Positions 1,576 to 18,248 of a stretch of 64,000 bases of DNA are shown here, one piece after another. The position numbers and the translations under genes are program-made. The notes beneath the pieces were generated by a model. It had not been told where the DNA came from. It did no database searches and worked only from the letters and a program-made list of their open reading frames with translations. The DNA is taken from sequence record NC_048046.1. The stretch is one strand, 5' to 3'. The first letter of the stretch is position 1; every line of letters starts with the position of its first letter.

Positions 1576-1607
1576 GTTCTGCCCGGCGCTCGACCACCGC
1601 CCAGGTC

Positions 1608-1840: not shown

Positions 1841-1847
1841 TAAGAGC

Positions 1848-1913: not shown

Positions 1914-1980
1914 CTCTACACCCTAGCGGCTATTTCTTAACAAAACGTAAACGCCCGACACTTTCGCGCCGGGCGTCTCG

Positions 1981-2244
1981 TTATGCGTCGTCCGCTTGCG
2001 CGGCGGCGCCGTAGTCGTGTTGATCCCATAGGACGCCCAGCGTTTGGTCAGGGCTGAAATGGGGGCAAACCGTTTCGATTGTGTCGTAAGTCTCCCGGAA
2101 GGCGAGCGCGTCGTCATCCTGGAGCCAAACCGACGTTTTGGCGGCCTTGTTGCGCAGCGTGTACGCCGCGCCGTTGCCGTAGCTGTCAAGGGCGAAGCGT
2201 TCGCCCTCCGATATGCGAATCGGGCCTGAGTACATGGTCAGCAC
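1981..2244 (-). CDS. Hypothetical early protein (87 aa)
   Basis: Protein-like composition; overlaps the next minus-strand ORF in an operon-like way. Confidence 0.75.
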   Translation of the reverse strand: MLTMYSGPIRISEGERFALDSYGNGAAYTLRNKAAKTSVWLQDDDALAFRETYDTIETVCPHFSPDQTLGVLWDQHDYGAAAQADDA

Positions 2245-2498
2245 CCCGTCGGGTCGGCCTTGGCGTAGCGCCAGCGCTCGCCGTCATGCCAAAGCCCGGT
2301 TGAGTGAACCGTTCCGTACTCGCGAATCTCGCGACGGGCGGTTTCGGGGTCGATTCGGTCGTATCGCCACCCCTTGCCGGCCGAGTCTTCGGAGGCTTGC
2401 GCCTCGCGTAGCTCTTTGGCCGTCATTTCGAAGATGTGGCGGGAGTAGCCGACGATTTCACCGGCCTCTTTCATGGGAATTCGGCGCATGACGTACAT
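2238..2498 (-). CDS. Hypothetical early protein (86 aa)
   Basis: Protein-like ORF with a GGAG RBS upstream. Confidence 0.75.
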   Translation of the reverse strand: MYVMRRIPMKEAGEIVGYSRHIFEMTAKELREAQASEDSAGKGWRYDRIDPETARREIREYGTVHSTGLWHDGERWRYAKADPTGC

Positions 2499-2600
2499 GT
2501 CGCGTTCTCCGAAGGCGCCGGGCGTTTCCGCCCGGCGCTAGGTTACCAGAGCGCCCAGAGAATGAGCGCGGCGAGTAGCAGGGGCGTAAGCTTGATCAAG

Positions 2601-2894
2601 CTACAGCCCCAAGGCATGGGGGACGCCCCAAACGGCCGCCGCGTTGCGCGGGCGGGCGTCAAGGGCCAATCGCCACCGGTAGAGGTATTCTCGCGCCGCC
2701 GCTTGTTCGGGCGTCCGGCCGTGTCCGATACGCTCCGCCATGCGGGTTGCGACGTCGGAGCCGGGAACCTTGCGCACCGGGTCGGAGCACATGTCCGCGA
2801 AGAGCGCGCACGCCTCTTTGATTGCCGGCGCGTTGTCCGCGAAGGACTGGCGCAAGAAATCGACGAGAGGGACGCGTTTAGGCGTTTCGTTCAT
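2601..2894 (-). CDS. Hypothetical early protein (97 aa)
   Basis: First ORF downstream of the minus-strand box at 2955. Confidence 0.75.
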   Translation of the reverse strand: MNETPKRVPLVDFLRQSFADNAPAIKEACALFADMCSDPVRKVPGSDVATRMAERIGHGRTPEQAAAREYLYRWRLALDARPRNAAAVWGVPHALGL

Positions 2895-3065
2895 AGGGCC
2901 TCACGATGTCAAAGAGCGCGGCGGGGTTGTCCGCCGACCCCTGCAATCTCGCACCTATTTCTTAACAAGACGTTAACGGCCGAATCTTTTTTGCGTTTAC
3001 GTTTTGTTAAGGAATGGGCGTTAGGTTGCTCTCGACGGCGCAACCCGCGCCCCTGGAGCAAGGCC

Positions 3066-3473
3066 ATGTTTTCGAACCTCCCGCCGCACCTCTTCGTTTC
3101 GTCCGCTGGCGGCGACCTCTTCGACACCCGCGACCCGGATTGGAATTTCAAGCCGCCGCTTCGCCGCGCCTATTCGACGGCCGCCGACCCTATCGAGACG
3201 CTTTCTCAGGTCAAGGCGGCCTTGCGGGCGGGTCCTTACGCTTGGCCGGGCGGGTATCCCCTGTATTTCGTCACCCGCGACGGCGCCGCCCTGAGTTTCG
3301 ACGCCGTGCGCTCGCAATTCGCCAGCGTGGCGGATGACTTCATGTCGGACTCCTCGACGGGCTGGCGCGTCTGCCGTGTTGAAATCAACTATGAGGATTC
3401 CGACCTGCGATGCGACCACACGGGGAAAGCTATCCCCGCCGCGCACGGTGACGACGAAGACGAACCGGCTTAA
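3066..3473 (+). CDS. Hypothetical protein (135 aa; AWPGGYPLY motif, C-terminal CDHTG)
   Basis: ATG at 3066 after a CCTGGAG RBS and the box at 2996. This is the plausible 3' part of the 345-aa track ORF. Confidence 0.8.
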   Translation: MFSNLPPHLFVSSAGGDLFDTRDPDWNFKPPLRRAYSTAADPIETLSQVKAALRAGPYAWPGGYPLYFVTRDGAALSFDAVRSQFASVADDFMSDSSTGWRVCRVEINYEDSDLRCDHTGKAIPAAHGDDEDEPA

Positions 3474-3539
3474 CCTTTTGTTAAGAAATAGCCGGTAGGG
3501 TGAAACCTGCCGGCGCATCCCGCGCCCTGGAGCCTGCTT

Positions 3540-3833
3540 ATGTCGCACGTCTATGACATCGAATATACCGACACGTTCGCCGGGGAGGCGAATTACTCAT
3601 GGGTTCGCCGGGCGACCGTGACCATGCCAGAGCTAACCCATTACGGGTATGACGGCGGTTCGAACTACTCCAAGGCGAACAAGGTTTTTAACCGCGAACT
3701 CATGAAGCGCGCCAAGGCCGCCATGGGCCTGACGGGCGTCAAGGGCGTCTCGACCACGCACGGGGACACCCTGGAGTTTCGCCCCTACGGCTCCGCGACG
3801 GTCCTTTTCGCCAACTATCGCGAAATAGACTGA
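3540..3833 (+). CDS. Hypothetical protein (97 aa)
   Basis: Box at 3470, leader hairpin and CCTGGAG RBS; followed by a hairpin at about 3840-3867. Confidence 0.8.
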   Translation: MSHVYDIEYTDTFAGEANYSWVRRATVTMPELTHYGYDGGSNYSKANKVFNRELMKRAKAAMGLTGVKGVSTTHGDTLEFRPYGSATVLFANYREID

Positions 3834-3902
3834 CCACGACGCCCGGCGCCTGGACGGCCGCCGGGCGTTCGCTTGCCCAGCCCGTTAACCATGTTTTTGA
3901 AA

Positions 3903-3969
3903 AGCGCCCAGCCTCGCCGTAGCGCCCCTACGGTTCGAAGAGCCCGGCCCCGCCGGTCCCGCCGGCTAC
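3903..3969 (-). ncRNA. Conserved non-coding element, copy 2 of 4
   Basis: Core at 3924-3950, downstream of the minus-strand box at 3987. Confidence 0.5.
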
Positions 3970-4096
3970 AGGTCCAATCTAGCGCTCATTCCTTAACAAA
4001 CCGTAAACGCGAGAATCTTTTTCGTGTTTACCTTTTGTTAAGAAATAGGGTCTAGTGTTCTCGTGTCGGGCGGATCGGCCGCCCTGGAGAACCTGA

Positions 4097-4681
4097 ATGC
4101 AAAACATGCCCAAGCATGACCGCGAAGTCATCTGCGCCATCGTTACGCACGCCCTGGCGCTCGGCTATGAAGTCGCCTGCGCTGATACCGAACTCGACTG
4201 GACGACTGACCCGGCCGCGATCTTCGCCGACCTCGGCGAGTGCGACGAAGAGCGAATCAGCTTCCGCAAGCCCGGCGACCCGACGCGCAAGCATTGGGTT
4301 TATCTGGTCTACGGGAACGGGGAAGGCGAAACCGTCTGCGACTACCGCGCCGACGCTGAAACCCGCGAAATCCTCGCCGTCGCCGACGCCCTGGCCAGCG
4401 TGCAAGACATGGAAGCGCTCGCGCTCCAGCACCGCAAGCCCTTCACGGAAGACGTGGGCGGCGACCTGCAACTGTCCATCGCCTGGACCGGGACTGGTTT
4501 CATGTACGGGCTCGCCCGTGGCCCGGACGCGCCTTCGCTGGACCTTCGGCGCCTGCAAGCGGTGTCTTGGCTCGCCACGCGCCCCGCCGACGACTACCGG
4601 AGCGCCGCCACCGTTGACCAAGTCGTCGCGGTCATGGCGGAAGTCGACAAGGTCCCGCACCTGATCGAACGCGCCGCCTAA
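4097..4681 (+). CDS. Hypothetical protein (194 aa)
   Basis: Box at 4027 and CCTGGAG RBS; terminator-like hairpin at 4688-4712. Confidence 0.8.
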   Translation: MQNMPKHDREVICAIVTHALALGYEVACADTELDWTTDPAAIFADLGECDEERISFRKPGDPTRKHWVYLVYGNGEGETVCDYRADAETREILAVADALASVQDMEALALQHRKPFTEDVGGDLQLSIAWTGTGFMYGLARGPDAPSLDLRRLQAVSWLATRPADDYRSAATVDQVVAVMAEVDKVPHLIERAA

Positions 4682-4783
4682 ATCGAACGCCCCGGAATCT
4701 TTTTCCGGGGCGTTTACCTCTTGTTAAGAAATAGCCGTTAGGTTGCTCTTGTGGCGGGACGGTCCCGCCCTGGAGAAGACCCG

Positions 4784-5182
4784 ATGAACGAAGCCCAAAC
4801 CAACGCCGCCGCCGCGATCAAGACCACGGGTGAAACGATCCTGGCGAAGATCGAAGCGGCCCGCGCGGAAGTCGCGGCGAACCCGCACCTCGCCGGCCAA
4901 TTCTACCTTGTCGCCGACACGGGCGGCGGTCTGGTCGTGAACTCGGACGGCGCGCACGGCTACCGCCTGAGCGGCATGTTTAGCCCCCTGACTCTGGCCT
5001 TCGACGCCACCGCCAAGGAAGAGGCCTATAAATTCGCCGGTCACTGGAATCGCCGCATAACGCCGGCTCAACGGGCCTCGCGCTGCACCGTCACCGTGAC
5101 GACCCGTGAGGAGGCCTGGAGCGCCCTCGAAAAGTCCTGGCGCGAAACCTTCGCCATGATCGAAGCCGCCAAGAAAGACTAA
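4784..5182 (+). CDS. Hypothetical protein (132 aa)
   Basis: Box at 4713, hairpin, RBS, ATG at 4784; hairpin at 5189-5212. Confidence 0.8.
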   Translation: MNEAQTNAAAAIKTTGETILAKIEAARAEVAANPHLAGQFYLVADTGGGLVVNSDGAHGYRLSGMFSPLTLAFDATAKEEAYKFAGHWNRRITPAQRASRCTVTVTTREEAWSALEKSWRETFAMIEAAKKD

Positions 5183-5283
5183 GGCGAGCGCCCCGGCCGA
5201 AAAGCCGGGGCGTTTACCTCTTGTTAAGAAATACCCTCTACAGTCCAACTTGTCGGCGCATCCCGCGCCCTGGAGCAAGTCCC

Positions 5284-5430
5284 ATGCGTAAGCCTCGCCT
5301 GTATTTCGAATATTACGGCGTCACCGTCTGGCGCAACACGTCGCCCGGCTTCGCCCTGCGCTGGAGTGGCGGCGGGTACGCGGCCGACACCCAAGAGGGA
5401 ATCCGCCGCCTGATCCGTGAGGGTCGATGA
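5284..5430 (+). CDS. Small hypothetical protein (48 aa)
   Basis: Box at 5213, CCTGGAG RBS, ATG at 5284. Confidence 0.7.
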   Translation: MRKPRLYFEYYGVTVWRNTSPGFALRWSGGGYAADTQEGIRRLIREGR

Positions 5431-5714
5431 GCAACGCCGCCCGCGCCGAAAAATGGATCGGCCGCGTTGAGCAAGGAGTCGGCCGCGCCCTCGAAAGAGC
5501 GGCGCGGTCCCGGCCCTTCGCTATCGAGGCGGAGGCCGCCCCGTTCCTGGCGACCTTCAAGCGTCAGGCCGCCGGACATGCCGCGCGCGCCCAGACCCTG
5601 GCCAGCCAAGGCGACCGCGTCGGCGCCTTGGTCGAGGCGGGACACGCGCAACGGTGCGCCGCGAACCACGCGAGAATTTTGGAGGCCGTCGACTCCGTCT
5701 TAACCTCTTGTTAA
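5427..5714 (+). CDS. Hypothetical protein (95 aa)
   Basis: ATGA overlap with the upstream gene. Confidence 0.7.
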   Translation: MSNAARAEKWIGRVEQGVGRALERAARSRPFAIEAEAAPFLATFKRQAAGHAARAQTLASQGDRVGALVEAGHAQRCAANHARILEAVDSVLTSC

Positions 5715-5770
5715 GAAATAGGGGCTAGGTTGCTCTTGTGGCGGGACGGTCCCGCCCTGGAGAACCTGAG

Positions 5771-6037
5771 ATGAGCACCCTTCCCGTTCGGACCCTGGCG
5801 CAAATCGGTCACCTGACTTGGGTGGCCACGCGCAAAGGCGCCGGCTTCGATGCGGCGTTCGCCGATAGTGACGACGCTATCCGCCACGCCATGAACACGG
5901 GCGGCAACGTCGGCCACACCCTCCTAGGCTGGATTGACATGTTCAGCCCTTCGGCGACGTTCGAAGAGAACCAACGGCAGGTCGCGGCCTTCCTCGAACG
6001 CGGCGACGAATTCGACCGCGTCATGGGCCAAGGCTAA
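5771..6037 (+). CDS. Hypothetical protein (88 aa)
   Basis: Box at 5700, hairpin and RBS; hairpin at 6043-6067. Confidence 0.8.
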   Translation: MSTLPVRTLAQIGHLTWVATRKGAGFDAAFADSDDAIRHAMNTGGNVGHTLLGWIDMFSPSATFEENQRQVAAFLERGDEFDRVMGQG

Positions 6038-6105
6038 GCCAAGCGCCCCGGCAGAAAAGCCGGGGCGTTTACCTTTTGTTAAGAAATACCCTCTAAGGTG
6101 ATCAC

Positions 6106-6170
6106 GTACCCGGCAGGACCGGGCGGGCCGGGCTCTTCGAACCGTAGGGGCACAACGGCGGGGCTGCGCG
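6106..6170 (+). ncRNA. Conserved non-coding element, copy 3 of 4 (inverted relative to the others)
   Basis: Reverse-complement core at 6125-6151, downstream of the plus-strand box at 6068; ends GCGCGTTTTTC. Confidence 0.5.
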
Positions 6171-6269
6171 TTTTTCAGCGCCTCGAAAAAGTTCACCGCG
6201 TTAACGTCTTGTTAAGAAATAGCGCCTAGGGTGGCTGTGTGGCGGGACGGTCCCGCCGGAGAAAACGAC

Positions 6270-6716
6270 ATGACCACGCAAGCCGCCCTCGCCGCCCGCC
6301 TGGACCGCGCCGCCCGGATCATCCGGGGCGAAGTCGCCGCCTCCAAGCGGAAAGAACGCAAGGCCCGCCGCGCGTTTTCCCGCGCCCTCGCCGGCATGGA
6401 CATTCCGACCTATGTCGCTTGGCTGAACGATCCGGCCGACTCCTTCGCCCTTACCGACGACGTCGCCCATTGGGCGCAAATCGGAATCACGAACGCCGCG
6501 CAACTCGGCGACTACCTGAACGGGTGCGTTCGTCGGGAAATGGAAAAGGACGCTCGCAACGGTTATTGCGATGACGCCTTTGACGACTACGCCGAACGCG
6601 GCGGCTACGGCGGCGGCGATGACGGGGAGGGCTACACCTTCGACCGCGACCGCGCCGAAGGGATCGCCGCCGACAAGGCCAAGCGCGACGCCATGCACGA
6701 AGACATGCCGTTTTAA
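6270..6716 (+). CDS. Hypothetical protein (148 aa), basic N-terminus and acidic C-terminus
   Basis: Box at 6201, hairpin and GGAG RBS. Confidence 0.8.
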   Translation: MTTQAALAARLDRAARIIRGEVAASKRKERKARRAFSRALAGMDIPTYVAWLNDPADSFALTDDVAHWAQIGITNAAQLGDYLNGCVRREMEKDARNGYCDDAFDDYAERGGYGGGDDGEGYTFDRDRAEGIAADKAKRDAMHEDMPF

Positions 6717-6795
6717 CGGTTTGTTAAGAAATAGCGTCTAGAACGAAACCACGGGCGGCGGATCGGCCGCCGCCCGGACCTTCGGAGCCCCGAAA

Positions 6796-6948
6796 ATGTT
6801 CCTCTGGATTTGGACCGTCGCCACCGACGAACTGACCCCCGCCTATAAGAACCCGCCGGCCGTCGCGCCGGAAGGTTGCCTTTTCCTCATGGCGGCAAAC
6901 CAACGCCAAGCGGAACGCGCCCGCGACCTCGCCAAGGCCGCCGGCTAA
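6796..6948 (+). CDS. Small hypothetical protein (50 aa; MFLWIWTVATDEL...)
   Basis: Read manually and absent from the ORF track; box at 6713, hairpin and GGAG RBS. Confidence 0.65.
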   Translation: MFLWIWTVATDELTPAYKNPPAVAPEGCLFLMAANQRQAERARDLAKAAG

Positions 6949-6973
6949 ACCCCTCAATCTGGAGCGCAAGCCC

Positions 6974-7543
6974 ATGACGCAACGCTACCGCCTCGCCGAT
7001 CAAATCAAGGTCGCGAACGAGGTTTCGAATCTACTCTATTCGGCCTCCGACGTCGTCGCCGTCGCTGCGCAGTACGAAACGACGCCCGCCGGTCAAGCCA
7101 AGCTCGCCAAGCTGCGAAGCGACCTCATCGGCATGAGCGCCGGCGCCCTGACGCACAAGCCGCCGGCCGCCGTGCTCGAAACCCTCGTTTGGGTTGTCGA
7201 GTTGGCGCAAGATCGCGCTACCGGCGCGGACTTCAACACGCCGCAAGAGGCCCTGGACGAACACGACGCCTTAGCCTTCGTTTGCGACTGGCTGAAGGCT
7301 CAAGGTCAGGACGTGTCGCCGATCATCGGCGCGCAACCGTCTTCCGAAGCGCTCGCTAAGTTGGTAGCGGCTCGCGACGCCGCACAAGCTGAACTCGACG
7401 CGCTGGAGGTTCCGGCCCTGCCTGAAGCGGTTGACGTCGTCGCCGACGTTCTCCGCTACAAGGACGCCCAAGGCGACGCGGACGACGTCCTTTCCGCCCT
7501 GGCGCGCGCCGGCTTCAAGGTCGTTCGGGAAGGGGAGGCCTAG
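6974..7543 (+). CDS. Hypothetical protein (189 aa)
   Basis: CTGGAG RBS and typical codon usage. Confidence 0.8.
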   Translation: MTQRYRLADQIKVANEVSNLLYSASDVVAVAAQYETTPAGQAKLAKLRSDLIGMSAGALTHKPPAAVLETLVWVVELAQDRATGADFNTPQEALDEHDALAFVCDWLKAQGQDVSPIIGAQPSSEALAKLVAARDAAQAELDALEVPALPEAVDVVADVLRYKDAQGDADDVLSALARAGFKVVREGEA

Positions 7544-7546
7544 CCT

Positions 7547-7786
7547 ATGGCGCAAACCTTCCCCCACGTGCTGGCGTCGCAGCACTTCCCCGGCCGGGGC
7601 GCTACGGCGCCCGGATCGGTCGTCCTTCGCGACCTAGGCCCGACCGCGCCGCATCGCTACGTCACCCACTTCCGCAACGAAGAGGACCCGGCGAAGCCGT
7701 ATCACGTCATGGGCCACTATTTCGCCGAAGACGAGGAAGCGGACGCACAAGCCGATTTCCGTAAACGCTGCGCTCGCGGCTACTGA
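7547..7786 (+). CDS. Hypothetical protein (79 aa)
   Basis: GGAGG RBS; operonic. Confidence 0.75.
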   Translation: MAQTFPHVLASQHFPGRGATAPGSVVLRDLGPTAPHRYVTHFRNEEDPAKPYHVMGHYFAEDEEADAQADFRKRCARGY

Positions 7787-7814
7787 TCAACCCTCAGGAC
7801 AAGGAGTCCAGACC

Positions 7815-8006
7815 ATGACCGACAAGACCCCCGCCAAGCCGAAGAAAGCGCCCGCCAAGGCCAAGGCCGCCCCGGCTCCGAAGGAAGCCGCCGCCGCGCC
7901 CAAGACGCCCCGCAAGGCCAAGGCCGCCCCGGCTCCGGCCGCTCCGCGTCCGAAGGTGCGCGGCCTGAAAGCCGCCCTTTTCGGGGGCGCGTTCAACCGC
8001 CTGTAA
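7815..8006 (+). CDS. Lys/Ala/Pro-rich histone-H1-like peptide (63 aa)
   Basis: AAGGAG RBS; repeated KAKAAPAP motif. Confidence 0.65.
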   Translation: MTDKTPAKPKKAPAKAKAAPAPKEAAAAPKTPRKAKAAPAPAAPRPKVRGLKAALFGGAFNRL

Positions 8007-8099
8007 AACTTCCCGGCGTTTACCTCTTGTTAAGAAATAGGAGGTAGAACATAAACACGGGCGGCGGATCGGCCGCCGCCCGAACTCCCTGGAGGCCCC

Positions 8100-8408
8100 A
8101 TGGCCCGTAAGCTGACTCTCTCGCTGCTCGCGAACCCCGATTTGAGCATGGCGAACGTCACGACCACGTCGCAGCGTATCGAGGACTGGACCGACACCCT
8201 TTATCCCGAAGACGGGAGCGAAGGCGCTGAAATCGTCCTGCCGCCGGTCACGTTCGGCGCCGTGTATGAGCGCGCCGAAGACCTGCTGACCAAGTCGCAG
8301 CAACGCACCGCCGAACGGTCCCCGAATCGCGAAGTCTCGCCCGACCTCGCCGAACGTTTCGAGGGAGCGACGGCCACGACGAATGGCGGGCGTCGTTTGA
8401 CCCCATGA
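8100..8408 (+). CDS. Hypothetical protein (102 aa)
   Basis: Box at 8019, hairpin and CCTGGAG RBS. Confidence 0.75.
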   Translation: MARKLTLSLLANPDLSMANVTTTSQRIEDWTDTLYPEDGSEGAEIVLPPVTFGAVYERAEDLLTKSQQRTAERSPNREVSPDLAERFEGATATTNGGRRLTP

Positions 8409-8782
8409 TGAACTATGTTTGGCCGGTCGCGCTTCCCTACCGCGCCGAAGCCTCGCAAGTCGCCGCGCTGCTGCAAGAATTCTGCCCGGTCATGACTCTG
8501 GTCAACTTCGGCGACGACTCGCCGTTCTGCTCCGAGTCCCACGCCTTCGCGCTCTCGGGCGGCGGAATGAACCTCGCCGACCAAATCGCGACGGCCTATC
8601 TCTGCGCCGGCGTCGTTCCGCCCTCGTCTCTGCTGGAATCGCTCCCCGGCGTGATCAGCGATTATCAACGCGACAAGGTCGCCCCGGTCCTGCGCAAGGC
8701 CTATCGGAAAGCCGCCGATTACCACGCGTACCGGGCTAAGGCGATCCGCCGGGAAGCCGGCCGCGTCTTCACCAAGTCCTAA
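8405..8782 (+). CDS. Hypothetical protein (125 aa)
   Basis: Operonic; hairpin at 8789-8813. Confidence 0.75.
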   Translation: MMNYVWPVALPYRAEASQVAALLQEFCPVMTLVNFGDDSPFCSESHAFALSGGGMNLADQIATAYLCAGVVPPSSLLESLPGVISDYQRDKVAPVLRKAYRKAADYHAYRAKAIRREAGRVFTKS

Positions 8783-8860
8783 GCCTGGAGGCCCGGCGCA
8801 CCCCGCCGGGCCTTTAGCGTGTCTGGCGCGTTAACCATGTTCTAGAATTGCGGGCAGGTT

Positions 8861-8915
8861 CGCCGTAGCGCCCCTACGGTTCGAAGAGCCCGGCCCCGCC
8901 GGTCCCGCCGGCTAC
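8861..8915 (-). ncRNA. Conserved non-coding element, copy 4 of 4
   Basis: Core at 8870-8896, downstream of the minus-strand box at 8933. Confidence 0.5.
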
Positions 8916-9041
8916 AGGACTCACCCTAGACCCTATTCCTTAACAAACCGTAAACGTGAAAAAGAATCTCGCGTTAACCTCTTGTTAAGAAATACCCCCT
9001 ATGGTCCTCTCGACGGCGCACCCCGCGCCCTGGAGTCTGAC

Positions 9042-9647: not shown

Positions 9648-9713
9648 CCTTTTGTTAAGAAATAGCCGGTAGGTTCATCCCTGCCGGCGCATCCCGCGCC
9701 CCTGGAGTCGAAC

Positions 9714-10364: not shown

Positions 10365-10414
10365 CGCAACCCGGCCGGCGCTTCGGCGCCGGCCTAGCCT
10401 GGAAAGGCCCCGCA

Positions 10415-10615: not shown

Positions 10616-10672
10616 CCTGTTGTTAAGAAATAGCCGCTAACCTCTAATCATCGAACAACGGGAGACACCCCC

Positions 10673-11245: not shown

Positions 11246-11248
11246 GCC

Positions 11249-11773
11249 ATGCTGAATCCGATCCTTCGCGAACGGCGCGAGCCGGTCGATATCGTCCTAG
11301 ACGCCCTCAAGGGCCGTATGGGCGAAGCCGACGCTTCGGAGGCCTGCGACTCCGTGTTCCTGGCCCTGCAAAACGAGGGTTACGCCGTCGCCCCCTTCAC
11401 GATTGAAGGCCGCCGCCTCACGCAAACGGATACGGGCGTCAAGCTGGGCGACGCGCTCCGGACGCTCTTCGAAGCGGTCCCGAACTACGCCGTTCGGTCG
11501 CAACGTCTCGCCGACGCCGTGAGCGTCGCTAGCGGGTACGTCTATCAACCCCGGTATCGCTTCCTCGCCGACGACGGCACGGGCGCGGCGATCCTGACCA
11601 ACTGCGACGACGGCCGGAGCGTTTATTTCCAGCCCGGCCCGGACGCCGACGAGGCCCGCGCCGAATTCGAGCGTTCGCAGTACACCGACGAGACGGCCGA
11701 AGGCTTCGGCGTCGCCGGCCTCTGGCGCGCCAAGGCCGCCGCCTATTTCAATGACGATCCGGAAGGGCTCTAG
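11249..11773 (+). CDS. Hypothetical protein (174 aa)
   Basis: Operonic spacing. Confidence 0.8.
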   Translation: MLNPILRERREPVDIVLDALKGRMGEADASEACDSVFLALQNEGYAVAPFTIEGRRLTQTDTGVKLGDALRTLFEAVPNYAVRSQRLADAVSVASGYVYQPRYRFLADDGTGAAILTNCDDGRSVYFQPGPDADEARAEFERSQYTDETAEGFGVAGLWRAKAAAYFNDDPEGL

Positions 11774-11776
11774 CCG

Positions 11777-12256
11777 ATGAGCTACGACACGAAGACTCTC
11801 GCCGCGCAAACGATCATCGACGCGCACACCGCCGGCCGTGGCCTGGAGGAAGGCCAAAGTCGGGCAACCGACCTCTACCACGTTCTCGACTCGCTGCTGA
11901 CGTGGAGCGACTTCCACGGCGTGGACTTTGACGCCACGCTTTCGGAGCTACGCGCCGACCTCGCCGAAGAGCCGCCTTGCGCCGGCAATGTCGGCCGGGT
12001 CGTCATCACGCTGGAAACCGGCGAAGGCGCCCGCGAGGAATTCGTGTCGCGTCACTACACGATTGCCGAAGCCGTCGCCGCCCTGGATGGCCCCGGTATC
12101 GACGCCAAGGCCCGGCATGAGGGCCGTTACACAATCGCCGCGCCGCACGGGCTGGGCTCGGACCTTGAAGCCGTCCCCCTGGCGCGCAAGCTGGGCTATC
12201 AGGGCAAGGATTGCCCCGCCGCCGCCTTCGCCTTCCTCTCTACCCGGATTCCCTGA
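11777..12256 (+). CDS. Hypothetical protein (159 aa)
   Basis: Operonic spacing. Confidence 0.8.
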   Translation: MSYDTKTLAAQTIIDAHTAGRGLEEGQSRATDLYHVLDSLLTWSDFHGVDFDATLSELRADLAEEPPCAGNVGRVVITLETGEGAREEFVSRHYTIAEAVAALDGPGIDAKARHEGRYTIAAPHGLGSDLEAVPLARKLGYQGKDCPAAAFAFLSTRIP

Positions 12257-12258
12257 TC

Positions 12259-12699
12259 ATGGCCAAGCGCAAGCCCTACACCCCGAACCCGTTCGCCCGC
12301 TACAGCGTCGGCGGCCTCTCCGCCGAAGCCAAGGCCGCCCGCCGGCCTTCCCTGGCCTGCCTTCGCGCCATCGTCCGGGAAGCCGCCGCGCTAAAGGCCG
12401 AAGCCGTGGCGCGCCTCGCTGATCAACGGTGGATGCGCGGCGCCTCGCTCATGGCGCAAAGCTGGACCCGTGACAACGCGGCGATGAGCGTTCACGCCCT
12501 AGCCCGGAAGAACCTCGAATATCTCCGGATGCGAGCGCACCTCACGGTTTCGCCAGAGCGGGCCGGCTCCTACGCGCCCGCCGGCTGGCCTATCGACCGC
12601 CCGGCCCTGGAAAAGTGGCAAGCCCTCAACCCGCCGCCCCCGGCCCGTGACTATGACTCGCTCATCGGCCGCGCCGCCCGCGCCTCCGGCTGGGCTTAA
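12259..12699 (+). CDS. Hypothetical basic protein (146 aa)
   Basis: ATG 2 nt after the previous stop. Confidence 0.75.
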   Translation: MAKRKPYTPNPFARYSVGGLSAEAKAARRPSLACLRAIVREAAALKAEAVARLADQRWMRGASLMAQSWTRDNAAMSVHALARKNLEYLRMRAHLTVSPERAGSYAPAGWPIDRPALEKWQALNPPPPARDYDSLIGRAARASGWA

Positions 12700-12712
12700 G
12701 GAAAGGATTCCC

Positions 12713-13000
12713 ATGTCGGACCTGATCAAGCTCAACCCCGAACCCGCCAACATGACCGCCGTCAAGCTGGGCGCCGTCATCCTGTATTTCAGCTATCAGA
12801 CCCTTGTCGGGTTCCGTTGCCCGCATCTGGGCACGGTGTCCAATCCGGACGGCAAGGGCTACGGCCGAACGACCGCCGGCCACATGACGAAATTCGGCCT
12901 CGCCAGCGCTCGGACCACGGCGACGGAATCGGATTTCCAGACGCTCGCGCTTCGGGCCGTTCAAGGCCACGTCCGCGACATCGGCGAATTGCTGATCTAG
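12713..13000 (+). CDS. Hypothetical protein (95 aa)
   Basis: AAGGA RBS; ATG at 12713. Confidence 0.75.
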   Translation: MSDLIKLNPEPANMTAVKLGAVILYFSYQTLVGFRCPHLGTVSNPDGKGYGRTTAGHMTKFGLASARTTATESDFQTLALRAVQGHVRDIGELLI

Positions 13001-13014
13001 TCGCGCCCGTTCAA

Positions 13015-13115
13015 GAGTCACGTTTCAGGCCTAACCTGACTCCAACAGAGTCACATTTTCCCGAAACCGTGACTCCGCCTCGATTTCCCGTCACGTTCTG
13101 GTCTAAACGTGACTC
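13015..13115. repeat. Three tandem 28-bp palindromes, consensus GAGTCACGTTT-N6-AAACGTGACTC
   Basis: Copies at 13015-13042, 13048-13075 and 13088-13115. Confidence 0.85.
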
Positions 13116-13306
13116 GTCCTAGTTCCTCAGTAAAAACAAGGAGTTATCTTGCGCTTCATCGAACACATGCTTGAAGGTTCCGGCGTCCTTTTCGCAATCG
13201 TCATCCTTTTCCTGCTGCATTAACCTCTTGTTAAGAAATAGCGGGTAGAGGTAGAGGGGTCAGGCGCACACCGCGCCGGCCCCTCTTTCTGTTGGAGCGC
13301 AGACCA

Positions 13307-13798
13307 ATGCCCGACTACAAGACGAACGACCCCAAGGGCTACATGGGCGACCCCCGCCGGGGCGCCGCCATGGGCCGTCCGACCTACGCGCCGGACGCCG
13401 CCGGCTGGACCGTGGAAGGCCTGAAGACGGCCGCCGCCCTCGAAGAGGACCGCGCCCGGATCGCCGAAGAGCAACGCGAGAACCGCCCCGGCGACGGCTA
13501 TAAGCGCCAGTGCTGGGAAGCCGCCGCCGCGTCGTTCCGCAAGGAAGCCGAACGCCTCCGCTCGCTCATCCCGGCCGCCCGCGCCATGCTCGCCGCCTCG
13601 CCGAAGATCACCCTTCAACGCGTCCGCCTGGACTCGGGCGGCTACGACCGCAACGGGACCTATTTCGGGCATGACCTCCCCCTGTATTGGGCGGCGGACG
13701 AATCCGGCGACTATGACGCGACGTTCCGCGCCGCCGACCGCAACGCGGCGAAGGCCATCGTTCGCGAGACGTACCCCGCCGCCCGCTTCTACAACTAG
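13307..13798 (+). CDS. Hypothetical protein (163 aa; GGYDRNGTYFG motif)
   Basis: Box at 13220 and GGAG RBS. Confidence 0.8.
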   Translation: MPDYKTNDPKGYMGDPRRGAAMGRPTYAPDAAGWTVEGLKTAAALEEDRARIAEEQRENRPGDGYKRQCWEAAAASFRKEAERLRSLIPAARAMLAASPKITLQRVRLDSGGYDRNGTYFGHDLPLYWAADESGDYDATFRAADRNAAKAIVRETYPAARFYN

Positions 13799-13875
13799 CC
13801 GGCGTTAAGGGGTTGTTAAGAAATAGCCGGTAGGGTCACACCTACCGGCGCACCCCGCGCCCTGGAGAAAATCGG

Positions 13876-14724
13876 ATGACCTCGCAACTCTGCATCGCCG
13901 ACGAAAACGCCGCCCTGGATTTCCTGGCGCGCGCCGTCCCCGCCCTCTGTGACGCCGGCATTATGCCGCCGACGCTGGATATTCTGGATTCGCTCGCCGC
14001 CAACCCGAACGCGTACGGTCTTAGCCGCGTCCCGGCCCTGGCGCCGCTCGCCGCCGAATGGGCCGGACCGTATCAGACGCAAGCGAATGACGGCGAAGGT
14101 CCGACCACGGTCCGGGCGCTGATCGTCGCCGCGCTGGGCGCCGATGAGTCCGGCAACTTCGATATCGGGTTCCGCACCTACGCCGTGAACGACTCGGAAC
14201 ACTGGAATCTTGCCGGGACTCCTCTGGAGGGCGTGCCGGCCTATAGCCTGTATCTGATCCGCGAAGGCGAGCAAACTTACATGTGCTCGCTCACGCCATC
14301 GAGCTACGCCTATGGGATTCAGAACGTGTTCCTCTATCCCGATCAAGACGGCTTGCCGGCTGTCAATGAATACGGGCAAACGGCGGTTGAAGCGTATATG
14401 GACGCCGAAAACCCCGAATATGAGGGCGTCGAAGATACCTATTTCGGGTATATGGGCGACCGCGCCGCATTCGACCGCCGCGAAGCCGAAGAGGGCGACG
14501 TTTCAGAGCGCCTTAGCTTCGATAAGTCGGTTTTCCGTGTGGACCTCTCCACGCTGGACGGGTTCGCCGCGTCGCCGGCCAATCCCCGCGAAACGACCGC
14601 GTTCGCCGACTTCGAAACCCTCGCCGCCGCCTTCTACAAGGCCGCGTGCGACTCGGCTTGGGAGGACGCGAAGGAATACGTTAGCGGCAACGCTACCGAA
14701 CCGCGCATTTTAACGGGTTGTTAA
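13876..14724 (+). CDS. Hypothetical acidic protein (282 aa)
   Basis: Box at 13805 and CCTGGAG RBS. Confidence 0.85.
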   Translation: MTSQLCIADENAALDFLARAVPALCDAGIMPPTLDILDSLAANPNAYGLSRVPALAPLAAEWAGPYQTQANDGEGPTTVRALIVAALGADESGNFDIGFRTYAVNDSEHWNLAGTPLEGVPAYSLYLIREGEQTYMCSLTPSSYAYGIQNVFLYPDQDGLPAVNEYGQTAVEAYMDAENPEYEGVEDTYFGYMGDRAAFDRREAEEGDVSERLSFDKSVFRVDLSTLDGFAASPANPRETTAFADFETLAAAFYKAACDSAWEDAKEYVSGNATEPRILTGC

Positions 14725-14788
14725 GAAATAGCCTGTAGGTTCTCCCCATGGGCGGCGGATCGGCCGCCGCCCGACCGGAGCGCCAGAC

Positions 14789-15001
14789 ATGGCTATCTCG
14801 ACCGCCGCCCTTAACGCTCACGTCGCCGAAGTGGCGGAATGTGAGTCCGACCTGAACGAAGCCTTTGAGGCTTTCGACCGGGGCGAAGCGCCCGACCGTG
14901 GCGACTGCGATTATGCGTTTCTGAAGCTGGAAACGGCGGAAATGCACCTCGCGCAATTCCTGGCGCCGGTCTTGGCGTCGCCGATCTTTGTTCACGCCTA
15001 G
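14789..15001 (+). CDS. Hypothetical acidic protein (70 aa)
   Basis: Box at 14710, hairpin and RBS. Confidence 0.75.
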   Translation: MAISTAALNAHVAEVAECESDLNEAFEAFDRGEAPDRGDCDYAFLKLETAEMHLAQFLAPVLASPIFVHA

Positions 15002-15012
15002 GAGGGCCTGAC

Positions 15013-15228
15013 ATGTCCAAGCGTCCTGACTTCACCGGCCGGCTTCCCGTCCGCGACGACGTGCAAACGGTGACGTGTCACCGCCCGCCGACGCGCTCGG
15101 AAATCAACTTCGGCCACGGCGCGACGCATTACCGGGATTTCCCGGTTGCGGCCGTGTGCTGGGCGGGAACCCGGTTCAAGAAAACGTGGTTCGTCGCTGA
15201 CGACGGGCTTCGCTACTACACGTCTTAA
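15013..15228 (+). CDS. Hypothetical protein (71 aa)
   Basis: GGAGG RBS. Confidence 0.75.
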   Translation: MSKRPDFTGRLPVRDDVQTVTCHRPPTRSEINFGHGATHYRDFPVAAVCWAGTRFKKTWFVADDGLRYYTS

Positions 15229-15305
15229 CCTCTTGTTAAGAAATAGGCCCTATGGTCTATTTCGAGGGCGGCGGATCGGCCGCCGCCCGAACCGGAGTAG
15301 ACGCG

Positions 15306-15737
15306 ATGTCCGCCCGCTTTCAAACCGCCGCCGCCGCCCGTCAATTCATGCTCGGCGGTAACGCCGTGGTCACGCTGCAAAGCGAAAAGACCGGCGCGCG
15401 CTTCACCTACAAAATCAAGGCCGCCCCTGACGGTGCGGTGTCGTTCGTTAAGCTCCTGACGGGTCAGGACAACGAATCGGATTACGCCTATATCGGGTTG
15501 ATCCGGGGCGCTCAATTCGCCCGGACGGCTAAGGCTCGCGTCACCGCCGACGCCCCTAGCGTCAAGGCCCTGGAATGGGCCTGGAAGGCGCTAAGCGCGG
15601 ATCGCTTGCCCGATACCCTGGCGATCTTCCATGAGGGCCGTTGCGGGCGCTGCAATCGCCTCCTGACGGTCCCCGAGTCCATCGAGTCGGGCTTCGGCCC
15701 GGAATGCGCCGGCCGCGTCCTGCGCCAAGCCGCCTAA
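15306..15737 (+). CDS. DUF6011-like zinc-finger protein (143 aa)
   Basis: C-terminal GRCGRCNRLLTVPESIESGFGPEC motif. Confidence 0.75.
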   Translation: MSARFQTAAAARQFMLGGNAVVTLQSEKTGARFTYKIKAAPDGAVSFVKLLTGQDNESDYAYIGLIRGAQFARTAKARVTADAPSVKALEWAWKALSADRLPDTLAIFHEGRCGRCNRLLTVPESIESGFGPECAGRVLRQAA

Positions 15738-15783
15738 CCTCAACGGGCGGGCCTCGCGCCCGCCCAAGCCCTGGAGTCCTGCC

Positions 15784-16014
15784 GTGGCCTATTATCCGCC
15801 CGTCAAAGGTCAAGTTCACCGTTTCCGCGACTCGGTCGCCCTGTACGTCGGGACCGGCGAGACGGTTTACGTTTCCGCCGCCGACGCTCGCAAGATCGCC
15901 CGCGCCCTGAACAAGGCCGCCAAGTCCTGCACCTCGGAGCCGTTCGCCCAAAGCTCCGGCCTGACGTTCTCGTTTTCGTTCGCGGACGGTCGGGAAAAAG
16001 ACCTTCCGCGTTAA
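15784..16014 (+). CDS. Hypothetical protein (76 aa)
   Basis: CCTGGAG RBS; GTG start. Confidence 0.75.
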   Translation: MAYYPPVKGQVHRFRDSVALYVGTGETVYVSAADARKIARALNKAAKSCTSEPFAQSSGLTFSFSFADGREKDLPR

Positions 16015-16093
16015 CTTGTTGTTAAGAAATGCCGTCTAGGGTGACGGCATGGGGCGGTGGATCGGCCGTCGCCCTAGCCTGGAGCGAAAGCCC

Positions 16094-16393
16094 ATGACCA
16101 AGACCAAGCGCCCCGCCGGCTACTACTCGAAAGCCGCCCGCGAAGCCCGCGCCCTGGCTCGCCAGCGCCGCGCCGCCGCCCGCCTCAACTGGTCGGACGA
16201 AAAGCGCCACAAGATGGCGACCAAGTCCGCCAAGTTCTTCGCCAAACACGCGGCCCGCGCCGCCCTGGCGGGGAACGAGAAAGAAACCCGCCGCCTATCG
16301 GTTCACATGACCCGATTCGACAACGTGCGCCGCATGGTCGGCGCCGTGTTGGCGGTCCGCGCCGCTCGCTTCCGCATCGAGGCCGCCGCGTAA
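16094..16393 (+). CDS. Hypothetical Arg/Ala-rich basic protein (99 aa)
   Basis: Box at 16011 and CCTGGAG RBS. Confidence 0.7.
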   Translation: MTKTKRPAGYYSKAAREARALARQRRAAARLNWSDEKRHKMATKSAKFFAKHAARAALAGNEKETRRLSVHMTRFDNVRRMVGAVLAVRAARFRIEAAA

Positions 16394-16425
16394 GGCGGCC
16401 TCACAACCCCTAGAAAGGACACCTC

Positions 16426-16623
16426 TTGAAACACGCCTCCGAAGCGCTCGCCGTCGTCGCCGTGTGCGGACTCCTGGCCTTTTGGCTCTGGAATGACTCG
16501 CATCCGGTCATGGTCGCCGTGGGCCTGGACTGTCAGGGCGAAACCGTCCGCGTCTACGGCGCCGACGACGCCCCGGAAGCCTCCAAGGTCTGCCGGACCG
16601 TGGAAATCCACAAGGTCCCCTAG
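16426..16623 (+). CDS. Small membrane/exported protein (65 aa)
   Basis: AAGGA RBS; N-terminal hydrophobic helix. Confidence 0.65.
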   Translation: MKHASEALAVVAVCGLLAFWLWNDSHPVMVAVGLDCQGETVRVYGADDAPEASKVCRTVEIHKVP

Positions 16624-16716
16624 AAAGTTCGGCCTCTTAACCTCTTGTTAAGAAATGGCCTCTAGGGTGACTACATGGGCGGCGGATCGGCCGCCGCCCG
16701 AACCGGGAAAATCAAG

Positions 16717-17097
16717 ATGACCCGTCAAGCTAAGCCCTTCGCTCACCTGAAGCCCAAGACCGGCGAAACCAAGGCGCAAGCCTTGATCCGACTCGGTGAT
16801 TTCTCGCGCTTCGGCATTATGGCCCAACTGCTGATCATGGAAGCTCTCGGCCGCAAGTTCGGCGCTATCGAGTACGGCCCCCGTGATACGAACATGGGCA
16901 AGCTCAAGCAATTCCTGAAGGCCGCCCCGAACGACACCGTTGCGGCCGTGGAAGAGTACGCCGGCGCCGTCGCCGCTATGGGCCTGGAAAAGGTCCGCGA
17001 ACAATTCAAGGGCGGCGCGGGCGCGCTGATCCACCCCGACTCCTGGCATGGCGTGGCGGTGGAAATCAAAACCGCCCTCGACGCCGCCAAGGCCTAA
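16717..17097 (+). CDS. Hypothetical protein (126 aa)
   Basis: Box at 16637 and leader hairpin. Confidence 0.75.
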   Translation: MTRQAKPFAHLKPKTGETKAQALIRLGDFSRFGIMAQLLIMEALGRKFGAIEYGPRDTNMGKLKQFLKAAPNDTVAAVEEYAGAVAAMGLEKVREQFKGGAGALIHPDSWHGVAVEIKTALDAAKA

Positions 17098-17169
17098 CCC
17101 TTCCCCTGTAGAGCGTACCGGGGCGGCGGATCGGCCGCCGCCCAAACCCCTAGGACTGGAGTCCTTCAC

Positions 17170-17364
17170 ATGTCCCGTTCGTTCCGTCACTCCGCCGCCT
17201 TCGAAGATACCCGCGCCGAATTCGCCGCCCGGAAGAACGCCCGCGAAAGCCGCCGCCGCGAATTCGAATCCATGGGATTCGATAACGCCGACGCCCTGGC
17301 CGTGCGCCGCTTCCATCGCCCCTACAAGGGCCGGAATCGGTCGGTCCTGGACATCGAAGCCTAG
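17170..17364 (+). CDS. Hypothetical protein (64 aa)
   Basis: Leader hairpin and CTGGAG RBS. Confidence 0.7.
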   Translation: MSRSFRHSAAFEDTRAEFAARKNARESRRREFESMGFDNADALAVRRFHRPYKGRNRSVLDIEA

Positions 17365-17459
17365 GCCCGGAAACGGCCCTTCTAGAGCCCCTACAGAAGG
17401 CCCGCCCTAATCGGCGGGCCTTTACTGTTTGGTAAGACCTTCCCCGCTAGAGTGTGTGC

Positions 17460-17672
17460 ATGGACAAGCCCGCTCTCTTCGAAGTCACCACGCGCCACGC
17501 CGACGGATCGGCTACCCGTGGGATCGTCCCCGCCGCTCTGGTCAAGACGGCCTATGCGCAAGCGCTGCGCAAGGCCTGGAAGGCTAAGGCGGGCGACCTC
17601 GTGACCGTGCTCCCCTACGGGGTGGCCCTGCCGAATACCCCTGCCCAAAGCGAAAGGCTTTTCTCGCTTTAA
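17460..17672 (+). CDS. Hypothetical protein (70 aa)
   Basis: Protein-like ORF; stop lies inside the next box. Confidence 0.65.
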   Translation: MDKPALFEVTTRHADGSATRGIVPAALVKTAYAQALRKAWKAKAGDLVTVLPYGVALPNTPAQSERLFSL

Positions 17673-17731
17673 CCTTTTGTTAAGAAATGGCCTGTAGGGT
17701 ACACCCATAGGCAACCCCTGGAGCTACCCCG

Positions 17732-17935
17732 ATGACCCTGCATCACACCCTCATGGAAGCCCTGGACACGGCCCAGATGAACGGCGCTACGGTCGACCCC
17801 CTGCATGCGGACATCCGCCGCGCCCTGCGCCTTGCCCAGATGGCGGGCGCTACGCTGGACACCCCGGAAGAGGTGGCCGCCGCTGTGCTGCGCATGAAGG
17901 TTGCGCAGTCGATGAACCGCCGTCGCAAGGCCTAG
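17732..17935 (+). CDS. Hypothetical protein (67 aa)
   Basis: Box at 17669 and CCTGGAG RBS. Confidence 0.75.
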   Translation: MTLHHTLMEALDTAQMNGATVDPLHADIRRALRLAQMAGATLDTPEEVAAAVLRMKVAQSMNRRRKA

Positions 17936-18035
17936 GAAGAAAGGCGTTCGCGTTTACCTCTTGTTAAGAAATAGGGGGTAATGTCTCTACATGGGCGGCG
18001 GACATCCCCGCCGCCCGAACCTCGGAGCCCCTGCC

Positions 18036-18248
18036 ATGTTCCCCCGTAACGTCGCCATCGCCGAAGCTGCTCAGTTCTCGCAAGTGTCCATGGCGGACTA
18101 TCGCGAGCATGTCGCCGAAGAGCGTCACGCCATGCGCGCGAAGCTGGCGAAGCGAGCCAAGCTCAAGGCGGACATCAAGGCGGGCGCGTTCGCCTTCGCC
18201 CTGGCCTTCGTGGCTGCTGGCGTGGTTCTCGCTCTGGGCGTGTTCTAG
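18036..18248 (+). CDS. Small protein with C-terminal transmembrane helix (70 aa)
   Basis: Box at 17953, hairpin and GGAG RBS. Confidence 0.75.
   Translation: MFPRNVAIAEAAQFSQVSMADYREHVAEERHAMRAKLAKRAKLKADIKAGAFAFALAFVAAGVVLALGVF

Follow-up and report, generated by a model that had tools for sequence, protein, structure and literature searches.

Caulobacter phage CcrPW (MH588545.1; genus Colossusvirus, Dolichocephalovirinae) has a genome of 308 kb, of which bases 1–64000 were analysed here (the window); the region examined agrees with that record at 99.8% identity and at corresponding coordinates. At 1931–18248, short genes are separated by near-identical sequence boxes in an array that takes up all the coding sequence of the direct terminal repeat (DTR). 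What these boxes do, and whether their repetition lets genes enter and leave the array, is the question raised by this locus. The original prediction described a recombination-driven, integron-like platform in which any captured open reading frame (ORF) is put under the control of the host cell-cycle regulator CtrA. The best explanation as a whole, which we consider probable, retains CtrA and recombination and gives up the integron: an array of early genes with CtrA-dependent promoters, in which homologous recombination takes place between the boxes.

Distribution and structure of the boxes

The exact sequence TTAA-N7-TTAA occurs 14 times in the 64-kb window, always at 2962–17683, against 0.06 occurrences expected by chance. 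A fuller pattern, TTWAC-N3-TTGTTAAGAAAT, recovers 25 good boxes and one degenerate box at 17421, in agreement with the 25 near-identical boxes first reported. Four of them (1951, 2976, 4007 and 8954) lie on the minus strand, which had gone unmentioned, and the plus strand carries 21 good boxes and the decayed one. Three of the four leftward boxes form a back-to-back pair with a rightward box about 19–20 bp away. The consensus is TT(A/T)AC-N3-TTGTTAAGAAAT-aGnnn-(C/G)TAGGGT, with 5–6 nucleotides between TTGTTAAGAAAT and TAGGGT. Neither the 3′ TTAA nor the 7-bp spacing varies among the 25 good boxes. Fourteen boxes carry the exact TTAA-N7-TTAA, about 9–11 have TTTA as the 5′ half-site, and box 9644 has GTAA; the decayed box 17421 has further mismatches (three).

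All boxes are located within 1918–17986, and none was found in 18.4–64 kb of the window. In IMG/VR, a strict version of the pattern matched the 308-kb CcrPW record 46 times, corresponding to one set of 23 per DTR copy, with no match in the 271-kb unique part of the genome. Every box points to a downstream gene or to a 75-nt non-coding unit, and box, −10 element, hairpin, GGAG and start codon follow one another in constant order and spacing. The array comprises about 39 genes (36 annotated and three unannotated ORFs), which bears out the estimate of about 40.

The boxes as probable CtrA-type promoters

Positions 1–15 of the box correspond to a CtrA site, and a TAnnnT element is found 11–12 bp past the 3′ TTAA in 24 of the 26 boxes. 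The 15-bp CtrA site of box 6713, TTAACGGTTTGTTAA, is identical to the sites of phiCbK gp005 and gp018, and the same architecture is present in phiCbK at 2594 (gp005) and 8835 (gp018). Phosphorylated CtrA (CtrA~P) shifts both of these phiCbK promoters in gel-shift assays, mutation of the sites abolishes the shift, and lacZ fusions of the two promoters lose activity in a ctrA(ts) strain (Mascolo et al., 2022; PMC9437464). One near-consensus site at −35 is typical of host promoters activated by CtrA (PMC11264516). A scan for canonical sigma-70 promoters gave one site against 2.4 expected, and no canonical −35/−10 pair is found in the box. Since a CtrA site and TAnnnT are present and the canonical pair is not, the box has the build of an activator-dependent promoter. 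The earlier assignment of the boxes to CtrA is upheld by the near-consensus site over −35, the −10 element at a fixed distance and the match to the validated phiCbK promoters.

In the proposed mechanism, each box would be a promoter for host RNA polymerase that needs the host response regulator CtrA. The near-consensus site TT(A/T)AC-N6-TTAA would lie over −35, with the −10 element TAnnnT 11–12 bp downstream and no usable canonical −35 hexamer, and transcripts would start about 7 nt past the −10 element. The predicted output is 25 promoters serving about 39 small genes and four 75-nt non-coding units.

CtrA control of DTR genes is already published, with the sites of CcrPW included, as CtrA sites were reported to be concentrated in the DTRs of phiCbK-like phages, CcrPW being named among them (Mascolo et al., 2022; PMC9437464). 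The phiCbK-like promoters of that study and those of CcrPW belong to the same phage group and share the DTR location, the CtrA site over −35, the −10 element, the leader and the association with small unassigned genes. They differ in the number of boxes, with 5–8 in 10 kb of phiCbK and 25 in 16 kb of CcrPW, and in the invariant core, which is longer in CcrPW. The same study does not describe hairpin families, stop-codon or terminator overlaps, the 75-nt unit or crossovers at boxes, and noted only the gain and loss of sites after rearrangements (PMC9437464). With the central claim of CtrA sites in the DTR already in print, the gain is therefore incremental and the novelty is in the details, namely the leader hairpin families, the overlaps of boxes with stop codons and terminators, the 75-nt unit, and the box as a site of gene gain, loss or swap.

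The CcrM methylation site GANTC is about 1.9-fold denser in the array (4.35/kb at 1931–18248 against 2.3/kb in 18.3–64 kb). Five GANTC sites precede a box by 9–18 bp; three of these fall in the 19-bp spacers between the boxes of divergent pairs. GANTC was considered as a fixed part of the box and rejected, its positions being too irregular. A separate motif, GTTAACCAT, which is a CtrA half-site with a CCAT extension, occurs eight times against 0.13 expected (166, 1630, 3884, 8830, 18382, 21813, 32500 on the minus strand, and 47451). Two copies are situated just beyond the ends of 75-nt units, and others near the DTR ends.

Gene gain and loss at the boxes

Comparison with relatives supports the repeated box/leader modules as recombination breakpoints, as in four independent cases a cassette was gained or lost with its junctions inside the box. 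The DTRs of CcrPW and CcrColossus are collinear with several indels. The gp005 and gp016 cassettes are missing in CcrColossus, where a single box occupies each place and is a chimera of the two flanking CcrPW boxes. The left part of each chimera corresponds to the CcrPW box upstream of the extra gene and the right part, from the invariant core on, to the downstream box, with the crossover points for both cassettes in the longest identical stretch of the box (TTGTTAAGAAATA...). Divergence between the two phages is mosaic, with one sharp step, at box 13220. In a second pair of phages, BL64 has an extra 560-bp module, absent at this position in Rogue, that consists of a leader, a gp004 homologue, a 75-nt unit and a box and is bounded by a duplicated divergent box pair. 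The module of gp004 and the 75-nt unit is found at another place in Ccr2 and is absent from phiCbK and Rogue.

A wastewater relative of CcrPW is mostly 95–99% identical in the contig pieces compared. One contig of 1124 nt joins position 5732, just past the −10 element of box 5700, to 6105, the equivalent position in box 6068, with the removal of gp008. In a second contig, homology stops at 9035, where the leader ahead of gp016 ends. In three wastewater runs, many weaker joints also fall on box or leader coordinates, and in several of the wastewater contigs a box with its leader borders on unrelated DNA. Close relatives of CcrPW are present in a number of wastewater metagenomes from separate studies (3900–9899 of the window was compared), and because of this the phage group appears to be common in sewage, with natural variants at hand.

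An uncultivated 25.7-kb phage contig (IMGVR_UViG_3300037350_000015) carries boxes of the form TTTAC/GTAAC-N3-TTGTTAAGGAAT, at least 22 in number, whose leaders are mostly short and hairpin-less. It has only eight weak homologues of CcrPW genes, and their order is different. The prediction of recombination at the boxes is thus sustained by the four gains and losses and by this reshuffled relative. The comparison of cassette content and order that had been proposed as its check gave a divided answer: breakpoints do fall at boxes and order varies, but CcrPW and CcrColossus are mostly collinear and some of their indels lie off the boxes. Another flavour of site, TTAAGGCGGCGTTAAGGTTAAC, with three half-sites, is present in the CcrBL9 DTR and in Brevundimonas phage Gurke. 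Gurke also has one box of the CcrPW type, with a type B leader hairpin (see below) identical to that of CcrPW.

The gains and losses are in keeping with ordinary homologous recombination between identical patches of 13–54 bp, as in the promoter-early stem-loop (PeSL) elements of T4-like phages. A module of 35–90 bp is present in 25 copies and also in other phages, and because of this repetition and sharing the recombination machinery of the phage would be expected to cross over inside it. Whole promoter–gene units could then be deleted, inserted or exchanged with their regulation unbroken, and a dedicated capture mechanism would be unnecessary. The junctions stand in the compared sequences themselves; the mechanism of recombination and its selective value are what we infer from them.

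Leader hairpins, stop codons and terminators

After 21 boxes, a GC stem-loop is found within a few nucleotides of the predicted transcription start and is followed by CTGGAG and, 6–10 nt on, by the start codon. The leaders fall into recurring types, with type A at 6753, 8059, 14750, 15266, 16677 and 17121, type B at 4753, 5740 and 6241, and type C at 3037, 3512, 5255, 9015, 9686 and 13847. The positions first given for types A and B proved exact, and the leader sequences then quoted occur nowhere else in the window. An identical stretch reported as 37 bp is real but measures 39 bp (4739–4777 = 5726–5764). Compared with 34-nt segments taken elsewhere in the window, the predicted folds of the leaders are as a group far more stable (Mann–Whitney p = 2e-9), and they leave the ribosome-binding site unpaired. 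No leader hairpin was found at boxes 10612, 17669 and 17421.

A hairpin with an A(A)TCCC loop is present in 41 of 116 leaders from eight phages, in 25 distinct versions. Across these versions, three stem positions swap GC for CG with pairing kept, and 84–100% are paired in register, compared with 0–72% when the partner column is shifted. This covariation of the stem argues that structure, and not sequence alone, is conserved.

Most transcripts would accordingly be predicted to begin with a GC-rich stem-loop followed by a free GGAG ribosome-binding site. The stem-loop would most likely shield the 5′ end (or a processed end) from decay of the RNase E type and keep the ribosome site open. Stem-loops at the 5′ end stabilise bacterial mRNAs, as in the ompA leader. 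Both that leader and those of CcrPW have a GC hairpin a few nucleotides from the (predicted) 5′ end and then an accessible ribosome-binding site; however, the loop sequence is conserved in CcrPW, which a purely physical block would not need.

A control site for protein binding is a serious alternative to the 5′-end stabiliser. In this alternative, which we regard as possible though somewhat unlikely, a phage or host protein reads the A(A)TCCC loop, or the inverted repeat in the DNA, and shuts off or times the early genes. The conservation of the loop over variable stems would be explained, as would the few recurring leader types common to several genera (type B being identical in a Brevundimonas phage) and the position of the hairpin at +3 to +30, which is typical of operators and translational repressor sites. 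Against this, types A and B have different loops, the hairpin is missing at some boxes and mostly so in the uncultivated relative, stem covariation favours structure over a fixed DNA operator sequence, and no candidate protein was found for binding the leader hairpins.

The boxes also overlap with the ends of upstream genes. The stop codon of the upstream gene lies inside the box in 10 of the 21 plus-strand boxes, which confirms that such stops are frequent, and these boxes begin with TTAAC or GTAAC. Boxes of the TTTAC type are fused to a terminator hairpin or are members of a divergent pair. A strong upstream hairpin is found at five boxes only (1951 on the minus strand, 4713, 5213, 6068 and 17421), where the T-run of the terminator is the box's own TTTAC...TTGTT. 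GC hairpins thus adjoin boxes, as was claimed, but a terminator is not a regular part of every unit. This arrangement is a form of compaction, in which TTAAC boxes double as the upstream stop codon and TTTAC boxes supply the upstream terminator T-run. The description of the array as self-contained cassettes fits part of it, but terminators are few and many units are operons of 2–5 genes. Hairpin-plus-GGAG units without a box occur between genes at 10371, 15745 and 17121.

Counter-evidence and comparison with known systems

A number of points weigh against a CtrA-dependent array that recombines at its boxes. For the promoters, the CtrA-type identity of the boxes and the cell-cycle control of the array are proposed for CcrPW on the strength of its relatives, and 11 boxes have TTTA, not TTAA, as the 5′ half-site. 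The invariant TTG and AGAAAT go beyond the known needs of CtrA, so a second factor may read the box too. The timing of expression could also be of two kinds. CtrA-activated phage genes have been proposed to wait until the predivisional stage ('lytic deferment'; Mascolo et al., PMC9437464). Immediate-early firing is equally possible because CtrA~P is also abundant in swarmer cells, which these phages infect; the array could therefore be expressed at once in swarmer cells, which are rich in CtrA, or only later, in predivisional cells. For the breakpoints, CcrPW and CcrColossus also have at least four differences away from boxes, at 2230–2514, 7357–7822 and 11253–11756 and, as a 234-bp indel, in gp007. 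The wastewater joints were taken from assembled contigs, not reads, and exact identity between most box pairs is short (median 14 bp; at least 30 bp in 3 of 325 pairs). For the leaders, 5′ protection by the hairpin is a guess, and both the hairpin-plus-GGAG units without a box and the mostly hairpin-less leaders of the uncultivated relative separate hairpin from box.

The PeSL elements of T4-like phages (PMC2839356; PMC4122927) are also repeated promoter/stem-loop elements between small genes in a plastic region. In both systems, close relatives differ by indels with junctions in the elements, and each unit is transcriptionally self-sufficient. In T4-like phages, too, the stretch from the −10 element to the start codon holds the junctions, and mini-circles have been demonstrated (PMC2839356; PMC4122927). 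Unlike these phages, CcrPW belongs to an unrelated lineage of prolate siphoviruses, and its promoter would depend on a host response regulator, while that of PeSLs is a plain strong sigma-70 promoter. The common stem-loop of CcrPW is part of the 5′ leader, downstream of the start, and an upstream terminator stem-loop is present in five units only. The CcrPW array is an analogue of PeSLs and not a member of the group, given its Dolichocephalovirinae lineage and a box unlike the sigma-70 consensus.

Shuffling of the PeSL type could itself be under selection, with box-to-box mini-circles that hold a promoter and a gene being packaged or exchanged between co-infecting phages, and with the repetition kept partly for this. 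We consider this reading rather unlikely. It draws on the four independent comparisons with junctions inside boxes, on the different places of the gp004 and 75-nt module in Ccr2 and BL64 and its lack in the nearest relatives phiCbK and Rogue, on the unrelated DNA flanked by box-plus-leader in wastewater contigs, and on the mini-circles demonstrated by inverse PCR in T4-like phages (PMC2839356). However, the data are assembled contigs, with no circles or junction reads among them, the stretches shared by most box pairs are short (see above), promoter function fully accounts for the strong conservation of the box, and most of the array is collinear between CcrPW and CcrColossus. Shuffling may be either selected for or a by-product of promoter repetition.

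It is very unlikely that a factor other than CtrA (a phage protein, a phage GcrA homologue, SciP or MucR) is the main reader of the box, with the CtrA-like half-sites secondary. The invariance of TTG and AGAAAT(A)G beyond the known CtrA consensus, the broken 5′ TTAA in 11 of 26 boxes, the GANTC sites 9–18 bp upstream of five boxes in a GANTC-enriched array and the enrichment of GTTAACCAT would agree with such a factor. Yet phiCbK promoters of the same build without AGAAAT are bound and activated by CtrA, with binding abolished by mutation of the site (PMC9437464), the 3′ TTAA and the 7-bp spacing are invariant, and host promoters activated by CtrA are as a rule built with one near-consensus site at −35 (PMC11264516).

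An integron-like platform, in which a site-specific recombinase captures ORFs at boxes or hairpins and places them under CtrA, has the cassette-like look, the imperfect palindromes next to each ORF and the gain/loss junctions at repeated elements in its favour but is highly improbable, as no recombinase family was found among 38 of the 39 array proteins (Pfam; the 24-aa orfX3, at 13150–13224, was left out) and no integrase or recombinase from PHROGs among the 20 larger proteins scanned, there is no attC- or attI-type site, each unit has its own promoter, which is the opposite of promoterless cassettes behind one common promoter, the palindromes are found in the leader, 5′ of the ORFs, and not 3′ as attC is, and crossovers in the longest identical box stretch are what homology-driven exchange predicts. 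The likeness to integrons is the look of a short-gene array split by a repeated element, and nothing more.

The DTR location has a counterpart in phage T5. The pre-early genes of T5 are many small genes of the host-takeover type in a long direct terminal repeat, are served by unmodified host polymerase, and are present twice, at whichever end enters first. T5 A1 is discussed elsewhere (PMC3556154). CcrPW likewise has small genes in a long DTR, present at both ends; however, it has no sequence similarity to T5 and no evidence of two-step DNA transfer, and the T5 promoters are independent of a cell-cycle regulator.

A CtrA-dependent array with homologous recombination between its boxes joins two published ideas, the use of host CtrA by phages and repeated promoter modules as linkers for gene shuffling. 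If the boxes act as proposed, a gene dropped between two of them would be expressed only while CtrA is active, and the early-gene set of very large phages could turn over fast without regulatory rewiring. As reagents, the array offers 25 natural variants of a candidate CtrA promoter (including the TTAAC/TTTAC pair), three leader hairpin families and a small RNA candidate.

The 75-nt non-coding unit

Four boxes (1951, 4007 and 8954 on the minus strand and 6068 on the plus strand) lead to a 75-nt non-coding unit and not to a gene, with copies at 1838–1913 (−), 3889–3969 (−), 8838–8916 (−) and 6106–6187 (+). The copies share an invariant 22-nt core, GGGCTCTTCGAACCGTAGGGGC, and most of them end in a hairpin and a T-run. 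Four further units are found in CcrColossus and one each in BL64, Ccr2, RBC57 and BL57. In these five or six other Caulobacter phages the unit is 92–96% identical, also across phage genera, while the flanking DNA is 84% identical or less.

A tRNA/tmRNA scan of the unit was empty, and an Rfam search at a permissive threshold gave sub-threshold chance matches only, none near the gathering score. The core was found in no Caulobacter genome among 185,579 species genomes. Across these genomes, IMG/VR and JGI metagenomes, it matched known Caulobacter phages and a few chance sites in GC-rich DNA, which argues that the unit was not copied from a host sequence. Covariation in the predicted fold is no better than in shuffles, the copies being too alike. 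The unit is the least explained part of the array and is an undescribed candidate small RNA. A post-transcriptional control layer for early genes, made up of the conserved-loop hairpins and the four-copy 75-nt RNA, which together with the shared boxes would let regulated units move between co-infecting Caulobacter phages, is a doubtful proposal.

Units and genes of the terminal repeat

The units of the array are listed in Table 1.

Table 1. Boxes, leaders and associated features of the CcrPW terminal repeat (coordinates in the window).
Feature	Coordinates	Strand	Remarks
Direct terminal repeat (DTR)	1..18404	.	GenBank annotation of MH588545.1; identical copy at both genome ends
Box 1918–1951 (TTTAC type) + 75-nt copy 1	1838..1951	−	Strong terminator hairpin 1949–1978 adjoins box
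Box 2943–2976 + leader hairpin	2895..2976	−	Leftward operon: ORF 2601–2894, gp002c, gp001c
Box + type C hairpin 3037–3051 + GGAG	2996..3065	+	Before gp003; divergent partner of box 2976 (−)
Box + type C hairpin 3512–3526	3470..3539	+	Before gp004; gp003 stop codon in box
Box 3974–4007 + 75-nt copy 2 (core 3924–3945)	3889..4007	−	Unit ends in hairpin + T-run
Box + short type A hairpin 4068–4084	4027..4096	+	Before gp005; left junction of gp005 cassette missing in CcrColossus
Terminator hairpin 4685–4715 + box 4713 + type B hairpin 4753–4769	4685..4783	+	Before gp006; right junction of gp005 cassette
Terminator hairpin 5186–5215 + box 5213 + type C hairpin 5255–5269	5186..5283	+	Before gp007 and ORF 5427–5714
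Box + type B hairpin 5740–5756	5700..5770	+	Before gp008; upstream stop in box; left junction of wastewater gp008 deletion
Terminator hairpin 6041–6070 + box 6068 + 75-nt copy 3 (core 6130–6151)	6041..6187	+	Right junction of gp008 deletion, 6105
Box + type B hairpin 6241–6257	6201..6269	+	Before gp009
Box + type A hairpin 6753–6775	6713..6795	+	Before gp010–gp013; gp009 stop codon in box
Box + type A hairpin 8059–8081	8019..8099	+	Before gp014–gp015
Box 8921–8954 + 75-nt copy 4 (core 8870–8891)	8838..8954	−	
Box + type C hairpin 9015–9029	8974..9041	+	Before gp016; left junction of gp016 cassette (missing in CcrColossus, replaced in wastewater relative)
Box (GTAAC variant) + type C hairpin 9686–9700	9644..9713	+	Before gp017–gp018; gp016 stop in box; right junction of gp016 cassette
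Hairpin + CTGGAA(A)GG, without box	10371..10394	+	Between gp017 and gp018
Box without leader hairpin	10612..10672	+	Before five-gene operon gp019–gp023; gp018 stop in box
Box + extended type C hairpin 13256–13283	13220..13306	+	Before gp024; stop of ORF 13150–13224 in box; CcrColossus divergence steps down
Box (TTAAG variant) + type C hairpin 13847–13861	13805..13875	+	Before gp025
Box + type A hairpin 14750–14772	14710..14788	+	Before gp026–gp027; gp025 stop in box
Box + type A hairpin 15266–15288	15225..15305	+	Before gp028–gp029; gp027 stop in box
Hairpin + CTGGAG, without box	15745..15765	+	Between gp028 and gp029
Box + type A variant hairpin 16051–16074 (pairing kept via G-U)	16011..16093	+	Before gp030–gp031; gp029 stop in box
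Box + type A hairpin 16677–16699	16637..16716	+	Before gp032–gp033
Type A hairpin + CTGGAG, without box	17121..17143	+	Between gp032 and gp033
Terminator hairpin 17396–17423 + degenerate box 17421 (3 mismatches, no leader hairpin)	17396..17459	+	Before gp034
Box without leader hairpin	17669..17731	+	Before gp035; gp034 stop in box
Box + type A variant hairpin 17993–18016	17953..18035	+	Before gp036, last array unit

Most array genes are under purifying selection. Their dN/dS (the ratio of non-synonymous to synonymous substitution rates) against CcrColossus is 0.02–0.4 for most, which indicates that they are real coding genes. The three unannotated ORFs lie at 2601–2894 (−), 5427–5714 (+) and 13150–13224 (+), the last having 24 codons and ending in box 13220. 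The first two have CcrColossus counterparts with 77% and 89% identity, respectively; the third is hydrophobic, has a strong ribosome site and matches CcrColossus gp022. The annotated start of gp022 of CcrPW (12211–12699, +) overlaps gp021 by 46 nt, and the ATG at 12259, directly after the gp021 stop codon, looks likelier as the start.

The 38 proteins scanned gave a single Pfam match above the cutoff, DUF6011 in gp028, and the other 37 were without a Pfam family. Several array proteins fall in PHROGs families without assigned function. Apart from leads for gp017 and gp003, none of the genes tested could be given a usable function from Pfam, PHROGs or the ESM Atlas. The sole array gene with a functional lead proper is gp017 (9714–10364, +), a member of a bacterial family of wide distribution whose automatic name is 'antitoxin of toxin-antitoxin stability system' (feature score 0.97 and TM 0.89 in the Atlas); the 'DNA ligase' label of gp003 is doubtful.

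The left 1.9 kb of the DTR is non-coding and rich in other repeats (416–558, 1476–1554 and 1600–1850), which comprise a 22–25 bp tandem repeat (GGGACCC..GAAATT), a 29-bp tandem repeat and scattered TTAGGGTTAAC-like units. They may serve in packaging or replication or as sites for protein binding. Motifs resembling ACGTGACTC form two clusters, at 733–953 and 13015–13115, each with a GANTC methylation site, and the second cluster occupies the sole long non-coding gap within the array. The total count of these motifs is not above chance, but their clustering is.

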